This document shows positions 7,819-57,639 of a DNA stretch of 64,000 nucleotides, piece by piece. Every line of letters starts with the position of its first letter. Positions within the stretch are counted from its first letter, which is position 1. This DNA is from Bugula neritina (Eukaryota; Animalia; Bryozoa), in the NCBI GenBank assembly GCA_964035545.1, contig OZ037766.1, positions 10,034,722 to 10,098,721 of the forward strand, in the 5' to 3' direction. The notes under the pieces are model-generated. The model saw only the letters and a program-made list of their open reading frames with translations. It did no database searches and was not told where the DNA came from. The position numbers and the translations under genes are program-made.

Positions 7819-7884
<66 letters not shown>

Positions 7885-8655: not shown

Positions 8656-9079
8656 AGCATCTACAAAAATAACCCTTTAATATTGAGTAAAATACTATAA
8701 AAATAAGGCATTAGCTGCATTACTCTTAGGCTTACCAATTAAATGTGGATTTTCATTTTGTATAGTTATAATAATTCTAATTCATAGTTCTACTATTACT
8801 ATAACTATTAGTAGTAGTGTTATATAGCTATAATAAACTACATAATCACAATAACAGCAATACACTGGTGGTGTATTAAGTTAATTATTTATACTATTAA
8901 TTTCACGTAGTCAAACTCAAAGTCAATGTAATTTGAACTGCAAAAATACTTAACAGGAAATGAACGTTTTAAAGTTCAGATGTGTTCGCTTACTCACATT
9001 TGCACACGGGTAAACAATATTATTAAGAATTTTGTAGCGAGTATTTTTATGTTTCGTGATACTTTGCACGTGTATTGCA

Positions 9080-9860
9080 TATTAGTATGATATTAGTACT
9101 ACTACTAGTACTAGTAGTGGCTTAACATTGACTGTAACTGTAGGAGTATCAACTATCAATATTTATGATAACTGTACTAAATCAGTAATATAACTATTAG
9201 TATATGCGTTTTATGTTTTATATCTATAGTTAGTGCTATTAGTATTACTATAACAGTATAAGTTATACTATAACTATAAGTATAAGACAAGTAATACTAT
9301 TAGTATTACTAATACTAATAGTAATACTAATAGTAATAGTATAACTAATACTAATAGTAATACTATCAGTATTACTATTAGTATTACTATTAGTATTACT
9401 ATTAGACTTAGTATTACTATTAGTATTACTATAACTATTACTATTAGTATTACTATAAGTATTAGACTTAGAGTTACAGTTACACTCAAAGTCAAATTCA
9501 ATGGCTGTCACTGTCAGTCATTGTCAAGTCACACTCATTATCATTATGATTATCACTGTCAGACTCAGTGTCTTACAATTACTATTAGTGAATTACACTT
9601 GCAGTTGCAGTTACAGTTTGAGTTACAGTTGGACTAAATGTTATTGTTATTCATATTATTAGGCCTATTGTTTACCTTTGGCTTTAGGCTTTATGACTTA
9701 AACTTGAAGTTAAACCTAATCACTCATTTATTTTTTCTCAGTTCTGTCTTACTTTTGACTTGCACTTTGGGCTTGGCTTTCACTTTGTCTTTTAGTTTTA
9801 GTTTTAGTGTTAGTGTTACTCATCTTCATAGTCATGCTGTTAGTGTTACTGTTACTGTTG
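9080..9860. repeat. Low-complexity 3/6-nt periodic tract (TAGTAT/TACTAT/TTAGTG) in the DET1-NOL8 divergent intergenic region
   Basis: Visible repeats such as TATTAGTATTAC; they produce the ILIVILIV and NSNT pseudo-ORFs. Confidence 0.8.
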
Positions 9861-10756
9861 GTAACTTGCAATGCTTAGTTGAATATTCAAACATGAAGGG
9901 TGTTGATAGAGTTGATAAGTAGTTACTAGCAGTAGCATTTTTTGGTTCAGCATGGTAAAAAATATCTGGTTCTAGCCATTTTAAATCCACATTTATCATC
10001 AATCAATAATATTTATCTTGCAATATCTGCCGCAACACATTTATTTTTAAAACTCAGCTAGTACTAGTAGCTGTAGTAACTCAATTTCACTAATATGCTG
10101 AGATCATGGCTGATTGTTTAATTTATTTTGATCAATTTTACAAAAGCACTACTAAATTTGTAAGATTCAGTGAGCTTACAAAACTACAAAGCTGTAAGTA
10201 TAAATATGAAAAGTTAAATTACACAATTTTGAATTCTGATTTGCCGAAATTTCAAAGAGCTTCTGCAAGTCACTTGGGATTTTGGCATTTTTTTTCAGTA
10301 AATCCAATTAATCAGGGGGGGGGGCAAATAACATAAAGTTAATGTACTTCAGCAAGTTGACCTAATTATAGGAATTTTAAGCACTTCAGCTTGCAAGTAT
10401 TTGATTTGGCCCTAGCTTTGACGAAATTTAATACTAGTAATGATTGTAACAGTGGATCTAATAATTAGTATGATAAATTAGTGACTCAAATTTCATTCTC
10501 AATGATACCAAAATTACACAACTATACATTTATGTTACTGTAAAATGTTATATCTTAAACTCATATTTATAGTTTAGACAATACACTCGTGGCAAGAAGC
10601 ATAATTCAGTGTGTGGTTAATGGATTGATATTATTATATATAAATGTTATGAGTAGTAATCAACATTATTATACTTGTAATAAATTTATGAGCTTAAAAT
10701 ATAGTTAGTTTTCGCTACCATATCATATTTTAGGTTGCTTACCATCTTAGGAATCA

Positions 10757-13700: not shown

Positions 13701-16700
13701 TTGTAACATGATCAAAACTATAAATTTCAAAAGATTCGGTGTAAGATTGTAATGTTCTTTTTAAAATGATAACTTTTCTAGGCAGCTTTTAGTCATGATG
13801 AATAATCATTTTATATGCATACTATACAAATGGATGCTTCTTTTAACCAGTGTATTGAAATTTTGCTAATGTAGAGAAAAGGAAAAAAGCTATGTTGGAA
13901 GATGACATGGAGATTGTAGCTGGAACTGATATATCCCAAGCCTCTAAAAAAGTGAAACCCATCTCTACAGCCAAATCAATGGATTCTAATGCAGAGCCTA
14001 GTCAAAATACTGATCTTTCCAGATTTGACAGTGACTCGGATAATGATTTCGAGCCTGAGATTAAAAAGAAAACCAAGCAGTTCAGCCCAAAATCTAAAAA
14101 CACAAGACATGCATTTCCTGGCACAGCAGCATTTTCAATTGACAATGCTCTCAATAACGGCTCTGATGTCCCTATGGGCTCACAAAATAAACATGGCTCT
14201 ACTGAGACTAATGCACCTTCTAATTCTACAAACAGTAATGCACCTTCTAATTCTACAAGCAGTAATGCATCTTCTGATTCTACAGACAGTAATGCTTCTT
14301 CCGATTCTACTGACAGTAGTGCATCTTCTGATTCGGAAAATAGTGTAGCTGAGTCCACAGATTTATCTACTAAAAAGAAAACGAAAGATAAAGTCGAAAA
14401 ATGTAGTAAAATAAATAGCCCGGAATCACCTGCGCTGCTACACAAAACATCTGACAGCTCTACTGAGACGGAAAGTGCTAACAATCAATTACCTGAAAAT
14501 TCTGTCAATAATATTGAATCACAACTAGAGAATATTAAACAAAAAATTCCCGAACAGATTCATACTTTGACATCATTTTTAAGTTCAGCTGTACAGTCTG
14601 CTAATTTAGGACCAAATCTAAGCAGTACATTAAAGGAAAAGATGGCAGGCTCAAAGTCGAAATGTGACAGTGGCTCTAACACCTCACCTACACCTGTCTC
14701 CAATGCCAGCTCTGCAGATGCTCTAGTTTTTCTTTTAGAGTCTGCAGTCAGCATCATTAAATCTGCGAAAAAAACTGATTCTGAAGCTTTAAGCAAAAGT
14801 TTAGCTGTGCTTAATTCTGAATCAGATAAACCAGTGCCACAATCTCTCACAGGGAATAGCCGTTTGGCACAACCATCATTCTCATCTGACGAAAATGAAT
14901 CGGAAATGAAGCAACATACACACCGATTGTCCTCAAGCAGTCACACCAGCCAAGATTCTTCTTCAACTGACGATAGTGAATCACGGATTCCTCAATTAAA
15001 GCCAGATGTATGTTCTAGCTCCAACAGAAATAGTAGTTCACTTCAAAATGCTGATGTTTCAAAATCAAAACCATTGATGCTTATTACCAAAGACAAAAAG
15101 CAGACAATGGATACATCAAGTGACTCTTCGGACAGCGAAAATTCAGTCCCAGATGATTTACAACGGAAACCATCATTGATGTCTAAAAAAACTTCAAGTT
15201 GTGAAGATAATTCCTCTGCTAACAAGAATTCAAGCTCGGTGGTTGTTGGTCCAAAGGCTAATGGGAAAGTCAAGAACTTTATCTCAGTTGCAGAAAAGAG
15301 GGAACTAGCTAACCAGAAAAGGTTAGAAGCGTTAGCTAATAAAAGCAAGGAAATGAAAAATCAGAAGCTAGCCATTCAAAAGTCTCTATCTAATCTGGTA
15401 AGTTTATGCAATTATATAATATTGATTCCATGTCCTTTTTGTAGAGAAAACAGATGCTTTATTTTTTTTCTTGGTAGTTGGTCTTTGGCTTGCAGTATGG
15501 TATCAAATATTACATGCATATTATAATTTCAGGATACGAATGCTGCCAATCATAAGAGGATTGTGTTCGATTCAGACTCTGATGGTGAAGTTGGGCAGCC
15601 TGTTGCAAAAACACTTAAAACTGATGATCTGAATTCTTCTAAAAAGAAAAAAGTATATCTTATTTTAACTTTTATGTCTTACTACTGTGAATGCATGTAT
15701 ACAATTTATAGCGAATCAACAGAAATATGGACATAAATTTATAAATATATACAAATATTCTATTGCATTGACAATAATTCTGGTTTTATTGGTAGATACT
15801 TTTTGATGATTCTGATGAGGAGCAAGGAGAAGATTATGAAAAGATGTTTGCTTTAAAGCCCCAATTTGAGGGGAAGAGGGGTGCCGAGGTATAAACTTAT
15901 AGTTATTAAATATAAATTTCTTTACTTCTAAAGCTCCAAAACAAGTGATTATGTTGTTATGCAGTATTTTTCCAAATCCTTTGAATAATTGTTCTATTGA
16001 AACAATGTTTTACTTGTAGCTGTTGAACCTTCAAAAGACGTTTAATGATGATAATAGATTCAAATTAACAGAAAGATTTCTGGAGTCCGATTCTGACAAC
16101 GGAGATGAGGCAGAAAACTATACTACTGCAGGTGATGCCTTTTCTGTTTACTTTGTTCTTAAAATGATATTTACAATGTAGCAATTGAACTACTCTCTCA
16201 AGAGGTTTTACTTATGAATCTATGCAGTGGATTCCCCCACTCAATGTTTTTGAAATGTGAGGTCATTTTCAAGTTCTAAATCAATAAACATTGCTTCCAT
16301 TAAAAATATGCTTTTTCTATCAAAAAAAGCCGAAGCAACAGAAACTGTAACTGATGAAAGGCGACGGAACCTGGAGATACTTCAGTCTGTTGTTGGTAGT
16401 AAAAACATCCGGATAGATCATCCCGGTAGCTCGGTTAGCTCCAAGGCTAAAAAAATAGCTGATACTCCAGCTGCTGTATTCAGGTATTTTTATATCTTTT
16501 ATTTTTTATATTCCTTGTGCCTTTTTTGTTATTACTTGGATTTACTATATATTTCACTATTGTATAGTATTTTGTGGCCTAATAGTTGCTAATGTTACAG
16601 GTAAAATTGTTTTCTTCTGTATTTTTACTTCATCTTTTATTGTCGAAGCTTGCAACTTTTTTTGCTGTATTTTACAGAGATGTATCATCTATTCATTTTG

Positions 16701-37660: not shown

Positions 37661-40182
37661 ATATAGAGGGTGCTTCTTTCTGTCAAAGTATTGAAACAAA
37701 AACTGTTGTTTTTTAGTTTTTTACATGTTGTAAACAAGGTGTTAGGACTCAGATCAAATATTTTGTTATTCTGTATTTATTTAATTTACTGTTACAACAG
37801 TATACAATGCTATGAATGCAGTGCAAGAATTTAGATTCTACTTTTTGTCTTATGCATATTTAATTTATAACTATCAAAATAATAATTATTATGCAGATAT
37901 TTCAGGCTATTGAGTTTCACAAACATTAATTTTAGGGGACAAGTTGAATTAAAGCACATTGCTATTTGTTGACCCACCCTAATATACCTTTACAGTGTTT
38001 GCATCTTAAAACTGCTTTCTTGCAGCTGTTTAGAGAGTAGAGTTATCCCACTCAGGGCGGCAAAATGTCATGAACAAAAGCACAACATTTAAAAACTTTG
38101 ACTGGCTACTTCATGAAACTGTAAAATAGCTAGGTATTGTTAACTTGTATTTCTGTAAAATATTGCTAGTATTTCAATGTAAAGTTATATATCCATCATA
38201 TTGACCAGGCTTCAAATACCATATCATGCCAAATATATCAATGCTACATTTCTAATTGATCATCGGCCTGAAGTTCAGCCGAAATCGGATTTCCAGAAAA
38301 CTATGCAAAGAGTTTAGGAACACAAATAAAAATAGCTAATGCATTATAGCACTTTCCAGAATATAACTGGATGACTCCCAACATCTACTACACTAGCATA
38401 CAAGTAAAAATCATCTAATGTGAATTTATATCCTTGTGGATTACTTACTAGGTAGTCCACACTGTTATCTAGTGAAGCAGCTATGCATTTTATCTTCACG
38501 GCAACCTTTTTAAAATATTTCATCTCGAGAAACAGAGATAAGAGACCAGTGATGGGATGCTTTAATGCCCAACTGTTCCAATTAACACCCCTACAGTCCC
38601 TCACCTCTTGTTCTCTAGTGTAGTACACATAGGAGATGGTATAGCTGCAAAAATGTGTCAGCTAGCCTACAGATAGAATGTAGTCCCAAACGCTAACCAA
38701 AAAATAGTAGCCTGTTTTTGTTGCACAAGATTGGTACAGAGGTACACCCTATGGTGCATGTTGAGTCAACACCAAGCTTGGTAATGGTAATTTGTTTACA
38801 GTTGGAATTCTATCAGATTCTTCATTCTCCTGAAGTAAAAATGATAACTACTTTCTTATTTTGTTTGTGTGGATATACATTGTTGGTAATTATATGTTAG
38901 ACTTCAACATTATGTTCTCTTTTAATTACATATCTTGGTAAAAGTCAAATATTGTTACTTGCATACCTGGTAGTTTCCTGTACCTCTGGTCATGTGTAAA
39001 ACTGATTTCGTTTGTTTTCTTTAAATAATATTTTATAGTAAATTGCATTGCACAGGCGCAGCAAAAGCCTTCTCACTCGTTAGCAAATGTTCTCTCTAGT
39101 TTCCTGGGCCTCACTTGTGAGTCTAAAATCATGTTTGTGAAAGAAGTAATGCTTTTTGCTGTGTCATCATTGAATAACGATGCCACATCGCCTAGATCTT
39201 TAAAATGGATGACAACAAAAAATGCCTTGCTCTAAGTTTTCAATTTAGTTTGTAAGGGCACTAAATTGTTATTTATTAGATAACTAATTAGTCAATCAAA
39301 TATTGTTGGTATCACTAAGCAATCCAGTTTTGGTAAAACTATTAGACTTCCCCAGATTTTGAATTTATAAATATACAACTGCGTGCTGTATTTTTATGTA
39401 ATGCTATGCCATTGTATCATTATTGTTATTTTAACACTGTTTTGAAGCAATTACTATATCTACATTTTGAGTATGTTGCTTTTTTAAATTATTTGCTGCA
39501 CTGAATTTGTATGGAGTCTCTCTCTGTTTACTGTATCACCTTGAGAAAGAGAGGTTCTGTATTGTATGCTTGTATTAGATATTGTAATTTTTAGATGGAG
39601 CTCAATAAAGTTACCCAACATATCAACGTGTTTGTGTGTACAATAAATAGTTATCCCCTCCTGCAGTTGTAACATTACAGGTTAGGTGGGCACTTACCAT
39701 AATATGTCACAGATAAGATGGCTTATCACAGTTAATTTGAACTGTGCAACGAAACTAAATCACTGTTTTGCTTGTAAAATTTCTGTATTCATGGGTTTGG
39801 CCAGTTTTAGATGCTTAATATCTATTTGGTATTTGTGGGTTTCAGAAATATCGTATTCAGCTGACAGTCCAAATCAATGTGAGAAATGATGCCATTGTCA
39901 TAATTGCTCAGAATATAAATATAATATGGGAGGAGAGGGGCCCTTTCTTGTTTTATATTATGTAATGACTTATAATAGCATGCTAATTATGTGTTTTACT
40001 TGAAGAAGGAATGCTTTTGTTAAAAGCCAGTTAGCTGTTCCCAACGTATTTTGTAGAGCTGTAAATCGAAAGATGGCGTTCAATGAAGTGCAATGTTGTT
40101 ACAATATAACCAGTCCACTTGGCTGTAGTCAAGCTGGTACGCTATTGTTAGCATAAAGTATCGTGAAATATATTATAATTAA

Positions 40183-43100
40183 ACATCGTAGGCTTCCAGG
40201 TTATTTTGATAAAATCAATTACTGTTAATTAAGAGATCATACTTTTTTAGTTGCATTCACAAAATAAATACAAAAAATCTCAACTCAATATACCAGAAAA
40301 AATGAATTAAAATATATGTGTTAATAGCACTGATATTGACGTGACCGTGGCACATGAAAAATCTGAAAAAAGAGTTGTCTTCTACTTTTCTATATTAATA
40401 TATAGAGCTTGTCGTGAAAATAAAGATTTTTTAAAAAAAATATTGTGACCCTCTGGTAACTTCCTGAATTTAGAAAATTAGCTCATATATTTCTTTTCAT
40501 GTGGACAACAGCTCACTTTTTTTTAAATTTATTTTGAAGCTCTTTTCGTAAAAAATAATCAAAAGTAAAAAATCCAAAATTTTTACAAATTGGTTCGGGG
40601 CTTGACGTGAAAGGCATTTGGACGAAGATGTCAAGGTCACCATTAATAAATTTATTTTATCACAATTCACAATACTGCACGGAAAGTTAATGAAGTGAGC
40701 TGAAAATTAGGTTGCTAGCATATTGATATACATTATATTGATTGCTGCAGTATTATTTTTTAAATTTGTTTTGTTATCAGTTATGTTTAACTTTTTCATA
40801 GAGCTGCTGTTCGACTCAGAGTAAGACATAATATTAGCAACAATGATAATATTAAATTAAAATTATTATTAAATTCACGGTGAAGTATCACTATCACTAT
40901 GACTATGAGTATGAGTATCGTATAAATTAATTATGAGTATGAGTATCACTATGACATTAACTCAATCAGTGATTGATTATTACTATGAATATGACTATGC
41001 ATAACTCAATGAGAATATCAATATGAATATGGCTTCTAATTTTTGTAACTTTTGACTATGACGATGCTGATACTGATAGTGATAATCACTGCCAGCCCAA
41101 GTCTCATACTCATAGTGATACTATTACTAATAATAATTAGTATTACTATTAGTACAACTACTAGTATTACTCCTAGTTCTGATAATGATGCAGATGATAG
41201 TTTTAAAAGTTCTACTTCTACTTTTATAGTAAGCTAGATTGTATATTATAATTATGTTGAACTCGACTCATTTTTTACTACTAATGCTAATATTAATAGT
41301 AATAGTAATACTAATAATAATTATAGTTGTTATAATGATAGTAATACTAATAGTAATAATAACTATTTCAATTTGATAATTTATGTTATATAACAGCATT
41401 ATCGCTTATCAATTACATTGGTTCATAATATGCTTATTTTAATTTTGCTTTGTGTGTTTTGTCATGTTGTAAATATAAGTTCGTATGGTTATTTAATGAA
41501 CTAGAGAACTAGCCAAATGTTATGTAACGGTTGCAGTAATTTACTATAAACTCAGTGAAATTTAAAACCTAATTGATATTACTATGACATTGATTGTACA
41601 GAGGTAGCTAAAATATACATTAAATTACCAATAATTTTAACTCGCCAATACACTATGAGTAGAGCAATCAAATGCAATGATAGAAAATTAATTAGTCATA
41701 GCAGCCCAGGTCAGGTCTAAAATGATGTAGTTTTGTGATCCCTTATATAACAAAATAATTTTTTTAAACTAGTTTAATACTTTTATTATAAACACGCTTA
41801 TCAAAGTAACATGTTTTTGATGTATATTCTATTAAAAAAGCAATCACATCAGGTTTTCAATTTGTATGTTGTACAAAGTTCATTATGGTGACAAGTTACT
41901 AAATTATATGGTTCAGCTTTGTAAAGTAAAGCTGATAAAATAAAAACAATTATGTGATTGTTTTACTGCTATATATTAAATTTAAATGAGTTGAATAATA
42001 TCCTAGTGTAGTGAATTAGATATTTTTTTAGCTTTGGTACACCTGTTTGTTATAGGCTAACATTCCACCAATAGAAGAATGGTGCAAGTAGAAGAAATTT
42101 CAGGCGCAGAAAGCTAAGGAGCAGTCAGAATGCTGCCAGAGTTGTGAAGAGGCACTTGAAAAAGCTGAATTTCAATAATGACATGAAATTCGTAACAGAT
42201 CACCCTGGTGTATTTGAACTGACATGGCCAGCAGAGTTCTCGAAGTCACATACAACAGCTATTTACATCATCATGGTTAGCTTAAATTTAATTCCTATAT
42301 CAGTCTCTAATATATAGTTTGATATCTGCTGTAAATTCGCTTAAGGAGCATACACATGACCAAAACTGAGTTACACTATAGTATTTGTTCTTGAATATAT
42401 TTACCAAGATAAGTAGATTTGCTAATTCATTAACAGTAAAATTATAATGATACAACAATTTTTTTTTAGATGATTCAATCAATAACACAAGACACTACAA
42501 CATGGTTTTGCAGTTATAGAGTATTAATTTTCTGGCTCTTTCCAAATCTTCATAGAAGGCAAAGAAAACCACTGTCAGCTTGCCTTTATAACTGAGTGCA
42601 CACGTCTTCCACCTACAGATGATGATAAACAATTTGCTGGTGTGGAACTTTTTAATTTTGTTTACAATGAAGATAGATTATAGGACATTATTCTTTATGT
42701 ACAGATTGTCAAGTTTTGTTATAATTAAGAACAGTTTTAGTTTCAATAAATCAGTTCAACATTATGGACATCATTGCACAAGCATTTTAATCTTTACTAT
42801 CTACAAAGGTATCTGATGGACTACTTGAAAATACAAAACTATGCTCCAGATACACAATGAACTGACCAGCAAAGTTAAAATGAGTTGGAGATGTAGAACA
42901 TAATATCTTGTTCAAGGCTTTTCCCTGCTGTTGGAACCTTCTACTTCAGAACACTGAATTGAACAAACATATGTAGATATATGAAACTTTGCAAACAATA
43001 ATAATGTGAAATTACTTGCTAAGTATTACATTGCTAATAAATACAGCATTGAGTAATGTTTTATTTAATTTTTTGAGCCATTTGATCTATAGGCCCGCAT

Positions 43101-45474
43101 AGTATTTATACTATATTATAACTAATAAATTGCAGACACATTATGTCAGACCAGTTTCCATTTAAATAGAATCGTGTAGGCTATCAAATTTGTAGAAGTA
43201 AAAAACCGCATTCTTATTGAGTAAAATACTTGCCTTTTTGTTCATGATGCCTCCACTGCTACAAGAGAAGTTTTTATCAATACAGCTCCATCAATCTGTA
43301 TCCTGATGAAGCTAGTAGTTTAGGAACATTTGTGGCGGGGAGTGTAGGCTGAGCTGCAGTATAGGAAGAACCCCAACATATCATGTAATCTATTCAGCAC
43401 ATTATATGTATATTTATTCAAAAAAGAATTTAGAAAATGCTTTATGAAGCATGAACAAAGTAAAAATTAATGCTGGTGAAAGTAATATTATTACACCCAT
43501 TAGAATTACTAGCAGCTATAGCATTAAAATTATGTATTTTCATAAAAATGTGTCTAATTTATGCTACAAAGTTATTACTGCCAAAGGTTACAAAATTCAC
43601 CAGTCACATTCATGCAGCTGGCGGAGAATAACTAACTTTCACATGCAATAAATACAATTAGTAGCTCAATCTAATACTAATGCGCTATTAAATGTTAGGA
43701 GTATAAGTTATAGTTATTCTAAGGAATAATTGCAAAAAAAGTTACTTAGAGGAATTTAACTCTTATTATAATGTAATTATCTTCCAAGATAAATTACAAC
43801 ATCACTACTTGGATGCATACAATGTCATATTTATATTGGCAACAACATAATTTTCAATAATTTCCAATCTATTAACTTGAGCATTATGATGGTGATTATT
43901 TTATAAATAAGGCGATGATTAGGCACTGTTGGTATTTTGGTTCAATTTATTAATAGCTGTAACAGGCAGAGTTGTAAATATAATGGATATATCAAAATTC
44001 CAATGGGTATAGTACTCTAACACAACATTGATACTAATAATTGTAGCCACTTACTCTTAGAGTTAGTGAATAATGATACAGTCATAACAATCTGAATATC
44101 AATCAGCATTAGAGATAGGCTGACTGCTTTAATAATATTATAGTTATTATGTCAAATTGAATTTATTCACTATAACTATAAAAATTGTTATTATAATTAT
44201 AAATTAAAATAATTTAAATATTATATAATATATTGATAATTATTGGAATCATAATTATATTTATTGTTATGATCATTATGATTATAATTATTTAATATTA
44301 TCTTTGTTTGTATTTAAAGTTGTTCCTTAAATTTAAAGTTGTTTAAGTTTTATAAATTTATTCTAATTGTATTACTGTATAAGTATTGCTATTAGTATTA
44401 GTATAATTAAATTATTATAATTTATATTTTATTATTTATATTATTATTTATTTTACTTTTTATTTTAAGACCAGCAGTTCAAATTAATACTTGTGTCGTT
44501 TGCTTTATATTATAACTTACAAGTATAACGATTAACACAATAATATTACATTTGTTATTAGTATTACTATGAATATAAATATTTATATTAATATAAATAT
44601 AGCTATCGGTATAACTTATATTTATAGTTATAACTAATACTAATACTAATACTAATAGTAATATTTATATTATAAGTATTACTTTCGAAACTGATCCTGC
44701 TCCGTAACATTATGTCATATGATTATCATTATGACTAATAATAGTATTAATAAATATAACCATTGAATATGATTAATAATAGTTCACCAATAGGCGATAG
44801 TCATAGACTTAGAGTTAGAGTGAGAGTCATAGACATAGACTAGTGATACTCATACTGATACTCATACTCATACTGTGATTCAGTTTCACTGATTCAGTTA
44901 CAAATTTTAAAACTTGGTTTTACGTAGACAACTACTAACCTATAATTCATCACAAAACGGTTGAAAATCATCATTTACTGCATATTTAAGAGTAATTTTC
45001 TGGTAGTGTGGTCGACATGATAATTGAAATTAAAATAGGGAAAATTATTATTTTGTGATTTACAGCAAGTTACAAACTAGCGAAATGGAATAGTCCATTT
45101 GAAAACAGTCAAATTAGTTACCTTTCTTGATGTTGCGTAGCTAACGGTAGTTATTAGTAGCCGCCCGAAGAGTAACATTCATGTGATTTGAACTACGAAT
45201 AACGAGAATCTGTGACAAACCCGCTTCTTAATAACTTTACGCGATATAAACTCACGCTACAATAGGGCTATTTTGCCATCCCCACGTCAGAATAGGACAC
45301 GGAGGGCACGCTCGCGGGCAAGTCTGGGCAAGTCCAAGACACCTAATATGACCACTTTTACTTACATTTTTGTAGTGTTTTCGTATAAGAAATTGGATAA
45401 AATGCTGATAAAACAGTTGAAAAGCATGCAAACTTTTGCTCAAATGTAATAAATAACCTGGAAGCTTACCGCCT
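40183..45474 (+). mobile_element. Non-autonomous Kolobok-like DNA transposon, copy 1 (5292 bp)
   Basis: TTAA at 40179-40182 and 45475-45478. Imperfect TIRs ACATCGTAGGCTTCCAGGTTATTT vs reverse complement AGGCGGTAAGCTTCCAGGTTATTT (19/24). Near-identical second copy at 50876-55659; homology starts at the left TTAA and ends 3 nt past the right TTAA. Contains a KolX-like exon. Confidence 0.85.
42056..42275 (+). pseudogene. Decayed KolX-like (P2X7 ballast/Nanor-type Cys-rich) exon in transposon copy 1
   Basis: AG/GT-bounded 220-bp exon. Across one stop and two frameshifts it reads EEWCK*KKFQAQKAKEQSECCQSC..MKFVTDHPG..RVLEVTYNSYLHHH, resembling the WCxCxxC..ExxCC..CITxHPGF..VLxxAY pattern as I recall it. 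Confidence 0.6.
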
Positions 45475-45515
45475 TTAATGGCAAGTGGCAACCTACTCAA
45501 ATTATGGAAATATGT

Positions 45516-45527
45516 GGGGAAGTCCCC
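45516..45527 (-). promoter_or_regulatory. Candidate NF-kB (kappaB) site upstream of the cGLR gene
   Basis: GGGGAAGTCCCC; the minus strand contains GGGACTTCCC, a full match to GGGRNWYYCC, ~190 bp before the proposed ATG in very AT-rich DNA. Confidence 0.55.
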
Positions 45528-45712
45528 GTTTTGGTAATTTTTTTTCTATAGTGTTCCATTAGCTATTGATAACAGATTGAGCATATACACTATAATAGCA
45601 AGTATCACTTGTTGTTAGTTTAGCCAAGTGGTTTGTGCTGCTGGTATATCTCCCCCATATCAGGCTCCTTATTTACTATTTTATAGTGCAGTTTAATACG
45701 AATAAAGTCAGC

Positions 45713-48700
45713 ATGGAGGGTAAGAATAGAATTATTACATATTTATAGTACTAGTACTAGTTGCAGCATAAGACTCAATGTGTTTCTTCTATATTGTTAT
45801 TGTAGTTATTTATTTCTGTAGTTACATTACTAATAATTATTTCTACGATTATTAAACTATTATTATTATTAAGTAAACTAATATTAATAGCAACTTATAG
45901 ATGTTACCAAAATATGAATTTTGGCACCATTATTATAATTATGTACTAAAGTTATACTTAGCAAAGGTTGGGGCCCCCATCACTTGCACGAGGTCACACA
46001 CTGGTCAGTTCATCTAATTTAGTACAAACCCCTAATGTCAAACATAAAATATTTAAGCTGTCTGGTTTCAGTATTTTTTAGCTGTGAAAGATTTTGATTA
46101 CACTAATTTGGGTAAAAACGTATTCGAACCCTACAGAATTGATAAAAGTCAAAATATCTGTCCAGCTACACCACGTGCTATCAGCTGTGTTCCTAGGCGT
46201 CTTTTCTATAGGTGTTTGGTTCCAAGATTAAAATTTTCTGTAACACTAAAATTGACCTATTCATTCTCCGAAAAATGCAGTGCAATTACTGTATGCTTTA
46301 ATTGCTAGGTTCCACTTCATATAAGATTATAAGTTTAAAAACTTTCTTTCAGCTATTCTCGTTGTGTTCAACTTTGTAAAATGGTTTGAGCTGTGATAAT
46401 GCTGAAATAAAATCTGCTTATCCTTAGCCTCAATTATTCACAGTTTCAGTTTATTACGATTGAAAGCAGACTATGGCTAAATATAGACCAGTCACTTAGT
46501 ATATTAGCAGCTGAACAGATTAAAACTTGCAATACATTGCTGCAACTGCGTACTACAGTTCTGCTAGAGGACACAACTCCAAAATGTGGATTACGTTCTG
46601 CAATAATACTTGAGCATTTACCTTTACTGTTCAGAATTTTCTATTATGTGATTTCTGATTATGTTTAACTTTCTGTTCAAAATGCATTCACACAATGCAT
46701 GACAGTAATTTAACTTGTTCTATATGGCAAATACTGTTAGGCCAGTGAAATTTTATTTACTGGCACAGAATGTAGTCAAGAACTCCATGGTAACAAAAAT
46801 AAACTAATATAATGAATATTATTTCTGAGTATGGTGAAATACTATATTTGAAAAAATTGTCTTTTTTTCTCTAACAAATTTTACTGCAAAAATGTGTGAC
46901 ATTTACTTGGTTTGTGTTACTTTCCAATAACAAATAGTTTTTAATCAGCCACTTGTAAGTAATTCTAGTAAGCTATTTATCTTTTGATGCACTAAATAGA
47001 CCATATAAATTAGCTGCTCATCAAGAAGTAATCCCCACTATATAACCGCAGTTGTTGCTGGCCAACATAGTTCAGTTTGGAGCCCAGCTCTTCTACCTTA
47101 CCGCTAGGGAGCTTTGTTAACAGAGAATTTCTAATTCATTCAATTCATCTTGAGCCTTTACAGCAAATTGATAACTTATTTCTTCACCAATAGTCAACTG
47201 ACCTAAAGTGCTGTGCAGTGTCTACTTTTATATTTTCATACATTAAAAAAAGTAGCTAGTGTGCGCACTATTCAACAGATTTTTTTATTTCAGCTGGTAG
47301 TTGCTACATGAGCATTTTATGCATAAATTTTTTTCTGGCAAACTACATATTTTTGACAAGCTAGAAACCTTTGCAGTAATAAATAATTTTGCTGTTTTGT
47401 ATTTAGAGGTAAAAAAATTTGTTAATATACGTTCTCATTAATTTGAAAGTCCAAGAAATTATCATCCATTCTATTTTCCAATTGATTCAGGGACCTTTAA
47501 TAGAGTTTCATGAATCAAAAAGTTAAAAAGCACCTTTACAGGTATATACACGATTTTCTTTATCAGCATTTCCCTTTAGGAGTTGAACAACAAAGGTGGT
47601 GCCAGCAAACAGTATTATTTCTCATATTAATGTTGACAATAACCTTAAAGTGCAGTGATGGGTCACTTCCTCAAGATACTTGCCAGGTAAAAACTAAAGA
47701 ATGTGTTGGTAATCTTCACCCAGGGCTAACGAATTCTCTGCAGAAAATGACCATTGATGACGCGAAGTTATATGAACTGGCCAGGCAACTGAGGAGAATT
47801 GAGAAAAATTACCTGAGCTCTGAGTTGACACCTGTACAGAGAGCAAAGCCAGGTAATTCAACATTGATTTTGTCATAACGGCCTTTAGGCTTTCAGTTTT
47901 ACCATTATTATTACCAATACTACAAATAAGCGAAAAAATGGGACTTAGGTAAGTGCTACTAGCTTATATCATTTTAGTTGCTAACCTAAATTTTAGGTAG
48001 TCAATACATGCTACAGGTTTTGAAATGCTGATATATCTTTTTACAAAAGATCGAATGTTGCATTATTCAAAAGCCATAGCATCTTCATAATATTACTATT
48101 GTGTTACAAACACTGACATGTTTATGTTATTTTAAGCTGGTGCATATTTTATTTGCTAACAAAGATTGAATAGTCACTGTGCTTGCTTAGAATTTAAATT
48201 CATTTTCAAAAATTCTGGCCTCAGATCCTAAATTAATTATAAAAGCAATAATTATTGGTTGCAAGAGCATTAAATGATAACAAACTAGCTTTATGTGCGG
48301 ACTTTAGGCAACTACCAGGCTTACACATATATCATCAGGCTAAATATAAACAGCACTTTTTAAAAGTTATATCCGTTTGTTTGCTGCCACAACAAATTAA
48401 GATATTGTGGGACCATTTTCTGGCATGGCTTCTAATGTTGAATATTTTACAGGGTTGGTAAGCTACATCAAGGAGAAGCTGATTCAACCAGCACTGCAGG
48501 ACTGCTATGCTGACTTCGCTTACATGGGAAGTGCATACGAGTTCACATCTGTACCAGGTTCCTCGGATTTTGACATCCAGGTTTTTCTAAAAGTGCCATT
48601 TACCAGGCAAAACAGAGTGAAGATGTCATCAGCTACAGCCCTACCTAGTGGTGACCCAGACTGGATGAGAGTCAAAGGGGGACCAGAAAATCTACTGAAT

Positions 48701-50351
48701 GATGAAGGCTATTTTTCTCCAATTAAGGTCAAACCAAGTAATGATAATATGAACAATATCTAATGTAAAATTTGTAGCTGAACTTCATTTTTCTAAAACA
48801 AATCAAAAATTTCAATTAAAGCTATTTCGCAAACTAAAAGAAGTCATTTTATGTTTCAAACTTCAAGTCTAATTTTTATGACTGCATAGTTATGCTTTAA
48901 ACACAAGCCTGCGTGATACCAATAAAATTAATTTGGACAAAATAAATCAAATAGAAGACTAAGACCATGTTTATCAATTTACAGGCTCGCCAACTGGTCA
49001 CCAGTAAGATTGACAGGGCTCTGCAAGCAAATGGCTTTCAAATAAGTTTTCAAGGTTCTCCTGCTGTAGTTAGAAGATCCACACATGGACCAGCTACCAC
49101 CTTAGATGTGACCTGGAAAGAAGAAAAACTTTCCATTGACATAGTTGTTTGCTTGAGAAAAATAGATCTTCAGGGCAGGTGTGGTATAATCACATAGTTT
49201 CTTGCTTGCATGTGTTATGTTTCTGGTAAAACCCTGACTATTGTTTAACTATTGTGATTTCTTCCAGCAACTATGATCTGGTGGGGAAACCGTACCATGA
49301 AAAGGACAAGGATTTCTGGCGTCAATCGTATGCAGAAGAAGAGCTAGCCCAGCTTCGGAGATATCACTACAGTTCCATGTAAGTGAACTTGTGGGCTATG
49401 CATTTATGTTTTAAATATTAACAAATGGTTTTCAATAATATTGAAGCCTAAAGTAGAAAGCTCCAAGTAACCTGTAGTAAATTGTAGTATACACTTTTCA
49501 ACTAGCTGAAGCAAAGTGTATAACTATTCCAAACCATGTAAATGTATGGTGAAATTTTAACAACTTCAATAAAGCAAATAAATTGTCTCTCAACACTTGC
49601 TATTTACAAATATGGGGTGTACCTCTATTTACCAGACCCAACTTTCCTATTCACATATCGTTTTCATTAAATCATAGAATGAATTGACTTTAGGAGAAAG
49701 TCATTGCTGCTGAGAATAATGAAAGTTATAAAGAACCATCATCCTCAAATGAGAATGTTTGCCAGCTACTTCTACAAGAATGTCTTGTTTATGTTGGATG
49801 CTAGAAACCCAATTGCTAGCTGGGAAAGAGCTGACTTGGCGAACAGGTAATGTATTGTGTTAATTTTAGCTAAAAATCTCGATTGCAAGTTATAGGCCAT
49901 GTAGTTTTAACTTTCTGTGGAATAAAAAAAATCCTGTCTACGAGTGTACACTTTCATACACTTAGATTTAATATTGAAGTATGTATTAAGAAGAATTCAA
50001 CTTTTAAATAAACTAGGTTAATCTACAGTGAGAATTTTAATAAAGCTGTTTCCTTACAGCTATAGAAGTTGATAATAAACAATGCTAATTATAGAATACT
50101 ATGTACCATGACCTTTAAATACACTGAATGTATTAAGGTTAATACAATATTTTGTTGTCTATTTCAGGTTTATAGATATGATCAATCTGATCCACCAGGT
50201 GCTTTCAGACAGGTCATTGCCATTGCATTTCAATTCCAAGGTTAATTATCTTGCCAACAAAAGTGCTATCAGTATTTCTACTGTAGCCAATTACTTGGGT
50301 GATATCATCAAAAAAGGCAACTACAGCAATTTATTGGACAGAGTTCCTTAA
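45713..50351 (+). CDS. cGAS-like receptor (cGLR; Mab-21/cGAS-DncV-like nucleotidyltransferase), ~350 aa
   Basis: Exons 45713-45719 (proposed), 47724-47852, 48453-48727, 48985-49178, 49268-49378, 49694-49846, 50168-50351 join with GT-AG and consistent phases into 1053 nt. An alternative start at ATG 47747 gives 340 aa. Motifs: MGSAYE..SDFDIQV, HGPATTL, SIDIV, FWRQSYAEEE, LLRIMK, FASYFYKNVLF, SWERADL, LPLHFNSKVNYL. Confidence 0.9.
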
Positions 50352-50875
50352 GATTTTGAAAATATACCATCAGGTTCACTAACACCATGTTATATTTTCT
50401 GTACAACTTCGAAAATTTATTATTGATTTCACTTCCTCTTCCATCATTTAAGAACAATTTTTGCATCTAACCTAATGCATGCAATGTTAGCTTTCATATT
50501 TTGTGTTGCCATTTGTGATGGCTCCCGTCAGTTTTGGTCTCTTGGCATTATTCGCTATTGTTAGTTATAAGGGGTTTTATCTATAGTTGTCATAAATAGG
50601 TCAGTTTTAGCTTTTAGTGTGTAATAGTCAATTAACATGTGCTCTTTCTAGCTGTCCAATCAGTTTTGTGATATCTGCTATGGTTTATGAATGATTGGTG
50701 TTTTAATGAGCCATTCCATGGTTGGCAAGCTGGTCACGTGATTAGAGCATAATAGCGCGCACTTTAACAATAGTTAAAATAGCGGCGTAGTGTAGAGCGC
50801 AACGTAATTAGGTATAATTTGACTGAGAATTGTTACTAATAATAAACATGGCGACTGGATCGCGCTGCAAGTTAA

Positions 50876-53800
50876 ACATCGTAGGCATCCAGGTTATTTT
50901 GATAAAATCAATTACTGTTAATTAAAAGATCATACTTTTTTAGTTGCATTCACAAAATATATACAAAAAATCTCAACTCAATATACCAGAAAAAATGAAT
51001 TAAAATATATGTGTTAATAGCACTGAGATTGACGTGACCGTGGCACATGAAAAATCTGAAAGAAGAGTTGTCTTCTATTTTTCTATATTGATATATAGAG
51101 CTTGTCGTGAAAATGAAGATTTTTTAAAAAAAATATTGTGATCCTCTGGTAACTTCCTGAATTTAGAAAATTAACTCATATGTTTCTTTTTATGTGGACA
51201 ACAGCTCACTTTTTTTAAATTTATTTTGAAGCTCTTTTCGTAAAAAATAATCAAAAGTAAAAAATCCAAAATTTTTACAAATTGGTTCGGGGCTTGACGT
51301 GAAAGGCATTTGGACGAAGATGTCAAGGTCACCATTAATAAATTTATTTTATCACAATTCACAATACTGCACAGAAAGTTAATGAAGTGGGCTGAAAATT
51401 AGGTTGCTAGCATATTCATATTGATATGCATTATATTGATTGTTACAGTATTATTTTTTAAATGTGTTTTGTTATCAGTTATGTTTAACTTCTTTATAGA
51501 GCTGCTGTTAGACTAAGATTAAGACATAATATTAGCAACAATGAATGATTCAATGATAATATTAATAATTAATATCACTTTAATATTAAATTAAAATTAT
51601 TATTAAATTGAAATTCACGGTGACGTATCACTATCACTATGAGTATGAGTATCGTACAAATTAATTATGAGTATGAGTATCACTATGACATTAACTCAAT
51701 CAGTGATTGACTATTACTATGAATATGACTGTGCATAACTCAATGAGAATATCAATATGAATATGGCTTCTAATTCTTGTAACTTTTGACTATCACTATG
51801 ATGATGCTGATAGTGATAATCACTGCCAGCCCAAGTATCATACTCATAGTGATACTATTACTATTGTCTATTAGTATTAATAACTAGTATTACTATTAGT
51901 ACAACTACTAGTACTGTACTAGTATTACTCATAGTTCTGATAATGATGGAGATAATAGTTTTAAAAGTTCTACTTCTACTTTTATAGTAACTGTGAGCTA
52001 GATTGTATATGTTGAACTCTACTCATTTTTTACTACTAATGCTAATACTAATAGTAATAGTAATACTAATAATTATAGTTGTTATAATGATAGTAATACT
52101 AATAGTAATAATAACTATTTCAATTTGATAATTTATGTTTTACAACAGCATTATCGCTTATCAATTACATTGGTTCATAATATGATTATTTTAATTTTGC
52201 TTTGTGTGTTTTTTCATGTTGTAAATTTAAGTTCGTATGGTTATTTAATGAACTAGAGAACTAGCCAAATGTTATGTACCGATTGCAATAATTTACTATA
52301 AACTCAGTGAAATTTAAAACCTAATTGATATTACTATGACATTGATTGTACAGAGGTAGCTAAAATATACATTAAATTACCAATAATTTTAACTCGCCAA
52401 TACACTATGAGTAGAACAGTCAAATGCAATGATAGAAAATTAATTAGTCATAGCAGCCCGTTGCTTGAGGAACATTGAGCTACAGGTCTAAAATGATTTA
52501 GTTTTGTGATCCCTTATATAACAAAATAATTTTTTTTAAACTGGTTTAATACTTTTATTATAAACACGCTTATCAAAGTAACATGTTTTTGATGTATATT
52601 CTATTAAAAAAGCAATCACATCAGGTTTTCAATTTGTATGTTGTACAAAGTTTATTATGGTGACAAGTTACTAAATTATATGGTTCAGCTTTGTAAAGTA
52701 AAGCTGATAAAATAAATACAATTATGTGATTGTTTTACTGCTATATATTAAATTTAAATGAGTTGAATAATATCCTAGTGCATTGAATTAGATATTTTTT
52801 TTAGCTTTGGTACACCTGTTTGTTATAGGCTAACATTCCACCAATAGAAGAATGGTGCAAGTAGAAGAAATTTCAGGTGCAGAAAGCTAAGGAGCAGTCA
52901 GAATGCTGCCAGAGTTGTGAAGAGGCACTTGAAAAAGCTGAATTTCAATAATGACATGAAATTCGTAACAGATCACCCTGGTGTAATTGAACTGACATGG
53001 CCAGCAGAGTTCTCGAAGTCACATACAACAGCTATTTACATCATCATGGTTAGCTTAAATGTAATTCCTATATCAGTCTCTAATATATAGTTTGATATCT
53101 GCTGTAAATTCGCTTAAGGAGCATACACATAACCAAAACTGAGTTACACTATAGTATTTGTTCTTGAATATATTTACCAAGATAAGTAGATTTGCTAATT
53201 CATTAACAGTAAAATTATAATGATACAACAATTTTTCTTTTAGATGATTCAATCAATAACATAAGACACTACAACATGGTTTTGCAGTTATAGAGTATTA
53301 ATTTTCTGGCTCTTTCCAAATCTTCATAGAAGGCAAAGAAAACCACCGTCAGCTTGCCTTTATAACTGAGTGCACGCGTCTTCCACCTACAGATGATGAT
53401 TAACAATTTGCTGGTGTGGAACTTTCTAATTTTGTTTACAATGAAGATAGATTATAGGACATTATTCTTTATGTAAAGATTGTCAAGTTTTGTTATAATT
53501 AAGAACAGTTTTAGTTTCAATAAATCAGTTCAACATTATGGACATCATTGCACAAACATTTTAATCTTTACTATCTACAAAGGTATCTGATGGACTACTT
53601 AAAAATACAAAACTATGCTCCAGATACACAATGCACTGACCAGCAAAGTTAAAATGAGTTGGAGATGTAGAACATAATATCTTGTTCAAGGCTTTTCCCT
53701 GCTGTTGGAACCTTCTACTTCAGAACACTGAATTGAACAAACATATGTAGATATATGAAACTTTGCAAAAAATAATAATGTGAAATTAGTTGCTAAGTAT

Positions 53801-55659
53801 CACATTGCTAATAAATACAGCATTGTGTAATGTTTTATTTAATTTTTTTTGAGCCATTGGATCTATAGGCCCGCATAGTATTTACTATATTATAACTAAT
53901 AAATTGCAGACACATTATGTCAGACCAGTTTCCATTTAAATAGAATAGTGTAGGCTATCAAATTTGTAGAAGTAAAAAACCGCATTCATATTTAGTAAAA
54001 TACTTGCCTTTTTTTTTCATGATGCCTCTACTGCTAAAAAGAGAAGTTTTTATCAATACAGCTCCATCAATCTGTATCCTGATGAAGCTAGTAGTTTAGG
54101 AACAATTGTGGGGGGGGGGAGTGTAGGCTGAGCTGCAGTATAGGAAGAACCCCAACATATGTAATCTATTCAGCACATTATATGTATATTTATTCAAAAA
54201 AGGATTTAGAAAATGCTTTATGAAGAGATGAACAAAGTAAAAATTAATGCTGGTGAAAGTAATATTATTACACCCATTAGAATTACTAGCAGCTATAGCA
54301 TTAAAATTATGTATTTTCATAAAAATGTGTCTAATTTATGCTACAAAGTTATTACTGCCAAAGGTTACAAAATTTACCAGTCACATTCATGCAGCTGGCG
54401 GAGAATAACTAACTTTCACTTGCAATAAATATTATATAATATATTGATAATTATTGGAATCATAATTATATTTATTGTTATGATCATTATGATTATAATT
54501 ATTTAATATTATCTTTATGTTTGTATTTAAAGTTGTTCCTTAAATTAAAAGTTGTTTAAGTTTTATAAATTTATTATAATTATATTTCTGTATAAGTATT
54601 AGTATAATTAAATTATTATAATTTATATTTTATTATTTATATTTATTTCACTTTTTATTTCAAGACCAGCAGTTCAAATTGAAATTAATACTTGTGTCGT
54701 TTGCTTTATATTATAACTTACAAGTATAACTATTAACATAATAATATTACATTTGCTATTAGTATTACTATGAATATAAATATTTATATTAATATAGCTA
54801 TCGGTATAACTTATAGTTATAGTTATACTTATAGTTATAACTAATATTATAACTATAAGTATAAGTTAAAGTATTAGTTTCGAAACTGATCCTGCTCCGT
54901 AACATTAACATACTGATACTGTCATATGATTATCATTATGACTAATAATAGTATTAATAAATATAACCATTGAATATTATTAATAATAGTTCACCAATAG
55001 GCGATAGTCATAGACTTAGAGTGAGAGTCAATGTCATAGAAATAGAGTTAGACTAGTGACACTCATACTGATACTGTGATTCACTGATTTAGTTACAAAT
55101 TTCAAAACTTGGTTTTACGTAGACAACTACTAACCTATAATTCATCACAAAACGGTTGAAAATCATCATTTACTGCATATTTAAGAGTAATTTTCTGGTA
55201 GTGTGGTCGACATGATAATTGAAATTAAAATAGGGAAAATAATTATTTTGTGATTTACAGCAAGTTACAAACTAGCGAAATGGAATAGTCCATTTGAAAA
55301 CAGTTAAATTAGTTACCTTTCTTGATGTTGCGTAGCTAACGTTAGTTATTAGTAGCCGCCCGAAGAGTAACATTCATGTGATTTGAGCTACGAATAACGA
55401 GAATCTGTGACAAACCCGCTTCTTAATAACTTTACGCGATATAAACTCACGCTACAATTGGGCTATTTTGCCATCCCCACGTCACGGAGGGCACGCTCGC
55501 GGGCAAGTCTGGGCAAGTCTAAGACACCTAATATGACCACTTTTACTTACATTTTTGTAGTGTTTTCGTATAAGAAATTGGGTAAAATGCTGATAAAACA
55601 GTTGAAAAGCATGCAAACTTTTGCTCAAATGTAATAAATAACCTGGAAGCTTACCGCCT
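50876..55659 (+). mobile_element. Non-autonomous Kolobok-like DNA transposon, copy 2 (4784 bp)
   Basis: TTAA at 50872-50875 and 55660-55663. Same TIRs and colinear with copy 1 except a 566-bp internal gap and small indels. Confidence 0.85.
52829..53048 (+). pseudogene. Decayed KolX-like exon in transposon copy 2
   Basis: Same 220-bp exon with the same stop and frameshifts as 42056-42275. Confidence 0.6.
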
Positions 55660-57639
55660 TTAATGGATAACAGATATTGACAATTTAAAAGAATGTTTCT
55701 ACATTGAAAATTAAGGACAAGGACTAAAAGAGTAGTGGTGATAATAGTAATGATGAACTTAGTGACAACAGTGATACAAAAGAGTTAAATTTTATTATGA
55801 AACCACGTGGCATTATAGTATTAATCTCTCAGGATAATCATCAAAATGTTCTCATTATACTGAACTCAACTCTGGAATATTGATTAAAATATTGCAGATA
55901 TGAATTTTAAATTAATATTTTCATGATCAGCATAAAAAACTACCTCTGGTAATTAACTTTTGGGCTGATGGAGCTAATTGAAGACACTGTTGCTAGGTAG
56001 ATAAACAACGAATTTAGTACAATTTTGAGTCGCGAACTTTGACTGTTAATTACTCGCAATAATAAAAGTCGTTTGTTGTGGACCGCTGTGTGTATAACCT
56101 GGCATATTTCTGGTTCTATTTGACTGATTTTAAAAATTTAAAGTGCAATGTGATCACAAAGTCCTACTCTATTCATCCACATCAAAAAGTAAAAATCTTG
56201 GATGACCCCCAAGAGACCAAAAATGACAGCAGCCATCACATTTATTCAGTTATGCAATTTCACAATTTAGCTTATTCTAGTCATAATTTTTGACAAATTT
56301 TCTTCCCATTTCTGTTTATTATTAGCTAATATTCTAGAAAATCTATCTATATACTGAAAAATAAATTACCAACATGCATAATAAAGCCTTTCATAAACAA
56401 AGTGGCCTGAAGTCTGGATTTTTAGCATTGATTTGCATAAACCATTATTTTGTAGGCCTTCAAGCTTTGCCTACACTTTACTGTCTTTATACAGATATTG
56501 TCTTTACATATTACAAAAATTTCACAAGCAACTTGCTGGTCACTGTGACATACACCATTTAATTAGAAATTATGCACACTGCAGTTAGTAAACACAGATA
56601 GAAAGGAGCTATGTTCTGAGTTTTTGGTGAAATCAGGGGCGGAGAATTATGTATATCTTGCTAAAATTATTGAACCATCAGTGTTGGGGAAATCCACATG
56701 ATGAAAAAAAACTGTTCATTATTAGTATAAATAAACTATTAAATTAGAACAATCATTTGTTCAGTGTTGGTATATTCAAAGACACACCAATTGGCAATAG
56801 CTAATGGACAATGTTAACCTGGTGTACCAAATAGTGACATAATTAATAACAAAAATGTACTATAATCTTGTGATGCAATTAGGATAAAACAAACATTACT
56901 GTGAGTATTGATATCAACACATGGAAAATAAAATCAGAAACATACATTACTATGGTGAGCAAAAGTTTGAACACCTGAAATATGGCAATTGATAAAAAAC
57001 CAACTGTAATAGAGTAAAATCTGCACAGGCCTTCTTGCTCTCTAAAACTTTACAATGAGTCATCCATTAAATAAGAATTCAAACCTAACTAAAAGATTAG
57101 CATCAACAAAATTAAGTCTGTAATACTAGGAAATAATCATAAAATAAAATCCATTTGCACAAGACCCCATGCATAAAATAATGTGAAATAGAGCAACTGA
57201 TGTAATGCTCAACAGATACAAGTGAAAGACTGCCATTGTCACAGAGCATGAGCTCACTGAAGACACTCAAGCCGCCTCCTCTCAGTAGTGATTGACACCA
57301 AAATATGAACAGAAACCTGTAATCATAACATGAATGAATGTATTTGCATTGTTTCCATCTTTTACCAGGTCACATTATTAAGACATTCTTGAACATTTTC
57401 AGGAAAAATTTCAAGTTTATGAGATTTAAAACAAAATGCATTGCATGTATAAGTACGCAGAATGAACTCAAACATTGAAATACAAAATATATTCAATAAT
57501 ATTGATTGAGATAAATATTCAGTAGAGGTATATTCATTGCATGATATTCCACTGCCAGCCACTAGACTGAATAGAGTACTTAGAAGTAAATAAATACTAA
57601 CAACTGAGGATATTAAAAGCTGAGAAAACTTACTCAGGC

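Follow-up and report, generated by a model that had tools for sequence, protein, structure and literature searches.

Two direct copies of a TTAA-targeting transposon around a resident cGLR-like gene in Bugula neritina: a probable chance pile-up of separate insertions

Bacterial composite transposons of the Tn5/Tn9/Tn10 type encode the transposase that moves them and transpose as one unit, creating a single new target duplication. In maize, macrotransposons formed by Ac/Ds elements were reportedly described by Huang and Dooner in 2008. Linked Ac elements in direct orientation macro-transpose in that plant (PMC9910405; PMC3744419). A comparable layout is found in Bugula neritina, a common fouling species, where two copies of one transposon, here called A and B, enclose a cGLR-like gene, and a preliminary description had presented the whole block as a composite-transposon-like unit. 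The window, the complete 64,000-nucleotide stretch that we analysed, is chromosome C2:10,034,722-10,098,721 of a B. neritina assembly of 216.0 Mb and nine chromosomes (G000), built on 132x HiFi reads (PMC11480708). The layout of a composite is present, with two elements of the same family, correctly oriented outer ends and a passenger between them; movement as a unit is not, since an orthologous locus keeps the gene with two separate empty sites and B splits a host miniature inverted-repeat transposable element (MITE), giving three separate insertions. We read the locus, with a probability of roughly 0.85, as a recent, probably polymorphic pile-up of three insertions round a resident cGLR, in which the A/B pair came together by chance and cGLR copy number changed by ordinary tandem duplication without the elements.

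Self-comparison of the window revealed two colinear copies on the same strand around the cGLR, each about 5 kb long and bounded by TTAA, as had been described (Table 1). Alignment of A with B gave 97.2% identity over aligned columns, with 566 bp of A (43649-44214) missing from B and a longest perfect common run of 156 bp; the gap between them is 5.4 kb and the whole block measures 15.5 kb. The element ends read ACATC-GTAGGC... on the left and AGGCG-GTAAGC... on the right (reverse strand): base 1 is identical, bases 2-5 are mismatched, and bases 6-24 agree at 18 of 19 positions in A and at 17 of 19 in B. The outer ends of the pair are intact, correctly oriented and flanked by TTAA, but the mismatch at bases 2-5 means that they are not perfect terminal inverted repeats (TIRs). 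In the A-B interval the cGLR was the sole credible open reading frame (ORF), and no Rfam match was found there; the interval, described as holding that gene alone, also contains about 360 bp of another transposon and a dispersed repeat of about 115 bp.

The order and independence of the insertions were read from the host MITE and from a second assembly. The MITE is contiguous in nine of nine other copies and split by B at this locus, and half of it lies outside the A-B block. All nine read copies carry a 4-bp AWWT duplication and inverted ends of ~30 bp starting with G; an AWWT target is the hallmark of Sola1 (PMC3845634). The orthologous locus (L063) comes from GCA_010799875.2, a Canu assembly whose source was a Virginia colony typed S (PMC7576161), and is ~11% divergent from the window here. 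It holds the cGLR at the same place, adjoining DLGAP5 and sequence matching 39528-40182, and no trace of A or B was found in it: one TTAA stands at the position of A and one ATTG at that of the MITE with B, which makes two separate clean empty sites. Of the GAK-cGLR-DLGAP5 synteny that was to be compared, the DLGAP5 side is shared in L063, while the search with GAK exons stopped short of the DNA upstream of it. Short-read runs were compared with the window as well, namely X1, from a close but distinct individual, and X2, X5 and X6, from the divergent lineage. The match of X2 contig 10 ends exactly at the right TTAA of A (45475), with 348 more letters beyond, and that of X1 contig 8, at near-full depth, ends exactly at the ATTT of the MITE (50514), with 59 more letters beyond. 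Both stops fit empty sites, and the insertions on the B side are therefore probably polymorphic in the lineage to which the window belongs. The insertions have independent origins, the MITE was in place before B, and the cGLR was never cargo of the pair, as the preliminary description had itself argued from the nesting.

In the mechanism that we propose, the cGLR would be an old resident between GAK and DLGAP5, and three separate insertions would have occurred around it after the split from the GCA_010799875 lineage. A would have entered a TTAA ~2.3 kb upstream of the cGLR start codon and the Sola1-like MITE an ATTT 160 bp past the cGLR stop; B, from another sub-lineage of A's family, would have entered a TTAA inside the MITE afterwards. 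The elements would be non-autonomous DNA transposons, presumably moved in trans by a TTAA-specific enzyme, and the same-strand pair would have arisen incidentally in a burst of 100 copies that clustered mildly at the local scale.

Variation in cGLR copy number at this locus is real, but it ran opposite to the route that had been proposed. For the searches, the spliced cGLR was taken one exon at a time. Neither the DNA enclosed by A and B nor cGLR exon 2 has a second copy in G000, as DNA or as protein, and no relocated, tandem or deleted cGLR copy was found in G000 or in run X1 (gene-to-flank depth 1.01); the cGLR is single-copy in G000, and the paralogs with the same flanks that had been envisaged were not found there. 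A PF03281 search of G000 gave no match anywhere, controls included, and is not usable as a paralog count. The Mab-21_C search of G000 returned two other, distant loci, L061 (C7:5182748), which we take to resemble developmental mab-21, and L062 (C3:2587440), which resembles a second divergent cGLR. L063 carries a tandem cGLR pair (1058-7086 and 7097-14044), both frames intact, whose duplication junction joins the equivalents of two window points, one 1.2 kb beyond the MITE end (57474) and one 650 bp before A (39528). The two L063 copies differ from each other by 8.7%, with 7 synonymous codon differences, and from the window gene by 10.8-11.4%, with 24-25 such differences. Since the pair is more alike internally than either member is to the window gene, the duplication either followed the lineage split or has been homogenised. 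Between them, 21 codons differ nonsynonymously and 7 synonymously, against 27:24 and 29:25 for the window-copy pairs (Fisher P ~0.09), and judging from these codons relaxed or positive selection may have followed the duplication. L063 copy 1 is without the upstream region common to copy 2 and the window and has other sequence there (L063:1-1057); its exon 1 is the most divergent part. Gene-to-upstream depth, a rough estimate, was 2.8 in X2, 2.9 in X5 and 3.2 in X6 versus 1.0 in X1, and this read depth suggests a third cGLR copy in the divergent lineage; X5 and X6 skip 48838-48949, as does L063 copy 1. The L063 tandem pair could in principle be a fused-haplotype artefact of the Canu assembly, but these depths and the common skip speak against it. 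The elements had been put forward as a route to cGLR copy-number variation, but the duplication arose in a lineage without either of them here, with its breakpoints outside them. Of the structural alleles that had been looked for, empty sites for A and for the MITE with B occur in L063, tandem cGLRs occur only without the elements, and no allele lacking the cGLR was found among the assemblies and runs compared.

The element family is abundant and young. A census with exact end patterns over G000 gave 191 exact termini and 100 left ends on all nine chromosomes, so the genome search that had been suggested did find further copies, 100 in all. In the 20 copies fetched for reading their flanks and termini, TTAA is present at both sides (20/20) and the flanks beyond it are unrelated. 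Identity among family copies is 98-100%, and in several sub-lineages members on different chromosomes do not differ at all (100%), indicating that the family was active very recently. A is 98.1-98.7% identical to 20 dispersed copies, above its identity to B, and the deletion junction of B with a linked base change recurs at 22 loci on eight chromosomes (B and 21 others) and is absent from A. Another sub-lineage of 7.05 kb (L036, C5:8543558; L037, C3:9266138) has taken up a 1.78-kb Tc1/mariner whose frame is broken; its members on the two chromosomes are identical. Two further end pairs of ~7 kb lie on C5 and C8, and end pairs 10.4, 10.4 and 18.2 kb apart (C8:2861182-2871615, C8:3646991-3657379 and C8:1719271-1737451) are candidate cargo-bearing or autonomous copies. 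C8 also holds a head-to-tail dimer with one common TTAA (L015/L016, C8:9944241-9954736), the right 1,799 bp of which are identical (1799/1799); it may point to a circular intermediate or to targeting of the element's own end, and its joint occurs also in run X1.

When the observed copies were placed uniformly on each chromosome, 0.14 same-strand neighbours separated by <=5.5 kb were expected, and the probability of at least one such same-strand pair among 100 copies was 0.13 (0.24 for either strand). A second same-strand pair, of different sub-lineages, stands 8.3 kb apart at C2:6032183/6045782 (C2:6032183-6051128); the probability of two pairs within 10 kb is 0.03, and both are same-strand. 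Other close same-strand pairs are C9:7223259/7252412 and C3:18939346/18968702. The preliminary description had allowed that sufficient abundance of the element would undo its case, and this is largely what was found: at the abundance of the family, a pair of this kind is within the reach of chance (P ~0.13), and another is present at C2:6.03-6.05 Mb. For a single gene named in advance, flanking as tight as this would have a chance of ~3e-7, but the gene was noticed post hoc; the fair question is whether any gene is enclosed, and such enclosure is not unlikely.

Several observations weigh against our reading of the locus. Within 30 kb there are four same-strand pairs, more than uniform placement would give (P=0.007), and the five closest family pairs genome-wide are all same-strand, so that the copies were not placed wholly at random; the mild clustering could stem from a bias towards local insertion, from segmental duplication or from the loss of inverted pairs. 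An X1 contig joins 45474 end to end to 50872 at half depth, its short side being only 22 letters long; we attribute it to the C8 dimer, though the 22-base side is also compatible with a cGLR deletion allele. For X1 and X2 the empty sites are inferred from the match stops, the run-on letters being unread. Sampling comprised one haplotype and four short-read runs, from which rare structural alleles would escape. The over-representation of close pairs, together with the common strand and the 5.4-kb spacing, is what a local duplication or local hop of one element would give, and an assembly artefact could likewise double a single copy; we nevertheless consider this whole group of explanations scarcely credible and take it as refuted, because the deletion and linked base change of B are common to 21 distant copies and absent from A, and the two elements have different flanks, each with its own empty site. 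An artefact, which the preliminary description had named as a danger, is further opposed by the 132x HiFi coverage. Even less credit is due to the idea that the cGLR was brought here by a genuine composite transposon. The outer TTAA pair and correctly oriented outer ends are indeed present, but one half of the host MITE is found beyond the edge of the block, and the empty sites of L063, where the cGLR occupies the same place by DLGAP5 and the sequence matching 39528-40182, refute it.

Improbable, but deserving more weight than these, is that the pair acts now as a macrotransposon or recombination substrate, its outer ends moving 15.5 kb, its inner ends excising the gene and unequal crossover deleting or duplicating it. 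Maize Ac pairs behave so (PMC9910405), the outer ends are intact and correctly oriented, and identical copies on different chromosomes imply that transposase is available now or was recently; the family tolerates extra DNA, as the 7.05-kb sub-lineage with its nested Tc1/mariner and the C8 end pairs with spacings of 10.4 and 18.2 kb, whose content is unread, suggest, and the X1 joint has the form of an inner-end excision. No moved, excised, deleted or multiplied copy of the block was found in G000, however, and the gene depth in X1 is undiminished (ratio 1.01), within a thin population sampling; the longest perfect A/B run is also just 156 bp. Since the C8 dimer in the assembly has the same junction, the short side of the contig is 22 letters, the depth of X1 is undiminished and X1 seems to be without B here, we did not count the joint as a deletion allele. 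That the pair, in colonies with both insertions, is a natural cassette giving segregating cGLR-null or multi-copy alleles, the X1 joint then being a deletion, seems to us a shade more doubtful still. The claim that the locus is primed for unequal crossover or mobilisation survives insofar as 97%-identical direct repeats are a possible substrate, and the pair is in principle a latent one for unequal crossover or macro-transposition; no product was seen in the material sampled.

The class of the transposon bears on the same question, since a flanking pair of circle-forming elements could loop the gene out as a circle. Kolobok elements are characterised by a DDD/E transposase with C/DxxH (and by KolX). 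Their termini have the form 5'-RR...YY-3' (PMC9587614). As in Kolobok, TTAA is duplicated at the target in 20/20 copies, with a single TTAA at the empty site of A, and the right end (CT) fits the rule; the left end, AC, breaks it in all 100 listed left ends, whose terminal bases are fixed by the search pattern, and the 20/20 fetched copies agree. No transposase or recombinase was detected inside the element by Pfam (10 internal pieces) or in the Atlas, nor was a KolX remnant detected in the internal pieces; P0002, the sole phmmer match to these pieces among 1.8 billion proteins, was rejected as a spurious repeat protein. The TIR pattern had no match in metagenome contigs. G000 does contain a young family of intact PF20700 (Mutator/Kolobok-type) transposase ORFs of ~670-673 aa with equal scores, which lie at C3:2003681, C3:30958514, C5:8147839, C7:336185, C8:12986738 and other sites and are a candidate trans-acting enzyme. 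No PF20700 match lies between a left and a right family end in G000, and thus the autonomous partner with the same TIRs that had been sought was not found. The Kolobok-like label accordingly keeps the TTAA duplication and the AGG right end in its favour, and has the left end against it and no transposase detected. On these features a Kolobok-type DDE element is the better guess, by a modest preference; a tyrosine-recombinase type is a good deal less likely, and any other class slightly less likely again. In the tyrosine-recombinase (Crypton-like) or other circle-forming case, for which we hold a minority expectation, TTAA would serve as the core of recombination instead of being duplicated at the target by a DDE enzyme. 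Cryptons are without true TIRs and have terminal direct repeats of 4 or 6 bp (PMC3212892), and here the ends are asymmetric, the left one starts with AC, the inverted repeat begins at base 6, and the C8 dimer is an identical head-to-tail one with a single common TTAA. Against this stand the right end TTAA-AGG, the usual Kolobok form, the intact ~670-aa PF20700 ORFs, and tandem multimers known also in KolobokP (PMC9587614). A DUF3504/PF12012 search of G000 was likewise empty, but its control was silent too and PF00589 lay outside the search; no tyrosine recombinase gene was found in the element. TTAA at both ends with a subterminal inverted repeat fits a Crypton and a TTAA-specific DDE element equally, and a Crypton-like class is compatible with a chance origin of the pair. 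A CACAG-capped CMC element was rejected, the flanks outside TTAA being unrelated in 20/20 copies. An integrated circle, considered for the crossed 4-mers outside the copies (ATAA outer, CAAG inner), was rejected because other copies end at TTAA and the flanks of B are two halves of one MITE.

The enclosed gene comprises one intact Mab-21/cGLR reading frame at 47747-50351, with six exons of compatible phases encoding 340 codons plus stop (1,023 nt). Successive exons match successive pieces of PF03281 (Mab-21) and PF20266 (Mab-21_C), no single match reaching the whole-protein cut-off, and the intact L063 paralog carries both families; a window exon matches B. neritina EB796_003364 at 89%. The published cGLR motif is h[QT]GS X8-20 [DE]h[DE]h X50-90 h[DE]h (Li et al. 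2023, PMC9980059). The window gene reads YMGS-X11-DFDI followed by LDV at 89 or IDI at 100, with intact acidic residues and Met at the [QT] position; the spacing to the likely third Asp, 100 (alternatively 89), lies at the edge of the published 50-90 or beyond it. The gene is thus predicted to be cGLR-like. Exon 2 had no match in the PDB, and a cGLR exon had none in metagenome contigs. Intron 2 has a weak GTCAAA-type donor at 48728-48733, which the NCBI model of L063 copy 2 missed, splitting the gene into pieces of 137 and 103 aa. In run X1, six sites differ within 45 bp of exon 4 (49328-49372), three of them, by our reading, changing amino acids (E>K, Y>S, S>I), possibly as allelic diversity. 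A stands between the NF-kB-like 12-mer and the ~560 bp behind the GAK polyA-like signals (39604, 39642); because it separates the two, it may have altered the cGLR promoter.

Table 1. Features of the A-B locus, in window coordinates.
Feature	Position	Strand	Remark
Span whose element-free equivalent is tandemly duplicated in L063	39528-57474	+	junction of 57474 to 39528
TTAA, left target-site copy of A	40179-40182	.	one TTAA at orthologous empty site L063:7736-7739
Element A, 5,292 bp, putative non-autonomous TTAA-targeting DNA transposon, imperfect ~24-bp inverted ends	40183-45474	+	no intact ORF
TTAA, right target-site copy of A	45475-45478	.	read flanks; L063 empty site
NF-kB-like 12-mer (GGGGAAGTCCCC), putative	45516-45527	+	38 bp from right TTAA of A; 11/12 bases kept in L063
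Dispersed repeat fragment, ~115 bp	46003-46120 (approx.)	.	84-90% identity with 8 other loci
cGLR coding exon 1	47747-47852	+	putative start Met, from conservation; aligns with residues 1-36 of B. neritina EB796_003364
cGLR exon 2, GS-X11-DFD catalytic motif, weak GTCAAA donor	48453-48727	+	Atlas look-alikes are Mab-21/nucleotidyltransferase (NTase) clusters (weak evidence)
cGLR exon 3, third catalytic Asp candidate (IDI)	48985-49178	+	PF03281 E=8e-4
cGLR exon 4	49268-49378	+	PF03281 positions 159-193, E=0.13
cGLR exon 5	49694-49846	+	PF20266 positions 5-56, E=0.004
cGLR exon 6 with stop codon	50168-50351	+	PF20266 positions 57-99, E=0.004
ATTT, left target-site copy of host MITE	50511-50514	.	
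Left part (~360 bp) of ~937-bp Sola1-like MITE, GTGATGGC ends, AWWT 4-bp target-site duplication, B inserted in it	50515-50871	+	
TTAA, left target-site copy of B (inside MITE)	50872-50875	.	9/9 other MITE copies have a single TTAA here, running on into 55664+ sequence
Element B, 4,784 bp, same family as A, 22-copy sub-lineage with 566-bp internal deletion	50876-55659	+	
TTAA, right target-site copy of B	55660-55663	.	
Right part of host MITE (to 56239) and ATTT target-site copy (56240-43), outside proposed composite	55664-56243	+	

In a compact animal genome, chance can produce the layout of a composite transposon, and here that layout is the ordinary outcome of a young burst of 100 copies from an unclassified, very recently active family with asymmetric ends. 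Copy number of the cGLR differs between B. neritina lineages (1 versus 2-3), and the duplicates differ mostly at amino-acid-changing sites. Had the pair truly moved or deleted the gene, this would count among the rare animal examples of immune-gene macro-transposition.

Like a bacterial composite transposon, the Bugula block has two insertion sequence (IS)-like copies around a useful gene, but A and B are each flanked by a target duplication of their own, and the gene has stayed in place. With the maize Ac/Ds macrotransposons and reversed-ends transposition (PMC9910405, PMC3744419) it shares two linked elements of the same family in direct orientation with host DNA between them, a geometry in which outer ends could move the block and inner ends delete or duplicate it; in maize the products were isolated, whereas the Bugula pair consists of non-autonomous elements of different sub-lineages with no product seen. 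The gene agrees with animal cGLRs (PMC9980059) in its Mab-21 NTase core with a C-terminal helix bundle, its GS and three acidic residues and its lack of an accessory domain, and departs from their published motif in the Met before GS and the third-Asp spacing of 100 (or 89); unlike the bivalve-type cGLR expansion, this genome has few cGLR-like loci. The host MITE resembles Sola1 non-autonomous elements (PMC3845634) in its 4-bp AWWT duplication and its ~30-bp inverted ends from G. A and B resemble Kolobok non-autonomous members in the TTAA target duplication and the right end AGG...CCT (RR/YY), and differ from them in a left end beginning with AC, mismatched bases 2-5 of the ends and no detected transposase or KolX remnant. 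KolobokP (Kojima and Bao 2022, PMC9587614) likewise has direct repeats each with its own inverted ends, and occurs as solo copies and tandem multimers. It is, however, a dispersed family in which the long terminal direct repeats (LTDRs) are short (~660 bp in some families) and the interior encodes a transposase and a His-Me finger nuclease, whereas in Bugula each repeat is an independent element of 5 kb, a single-copy host cGLR occupies the middle, and the block occurs once.

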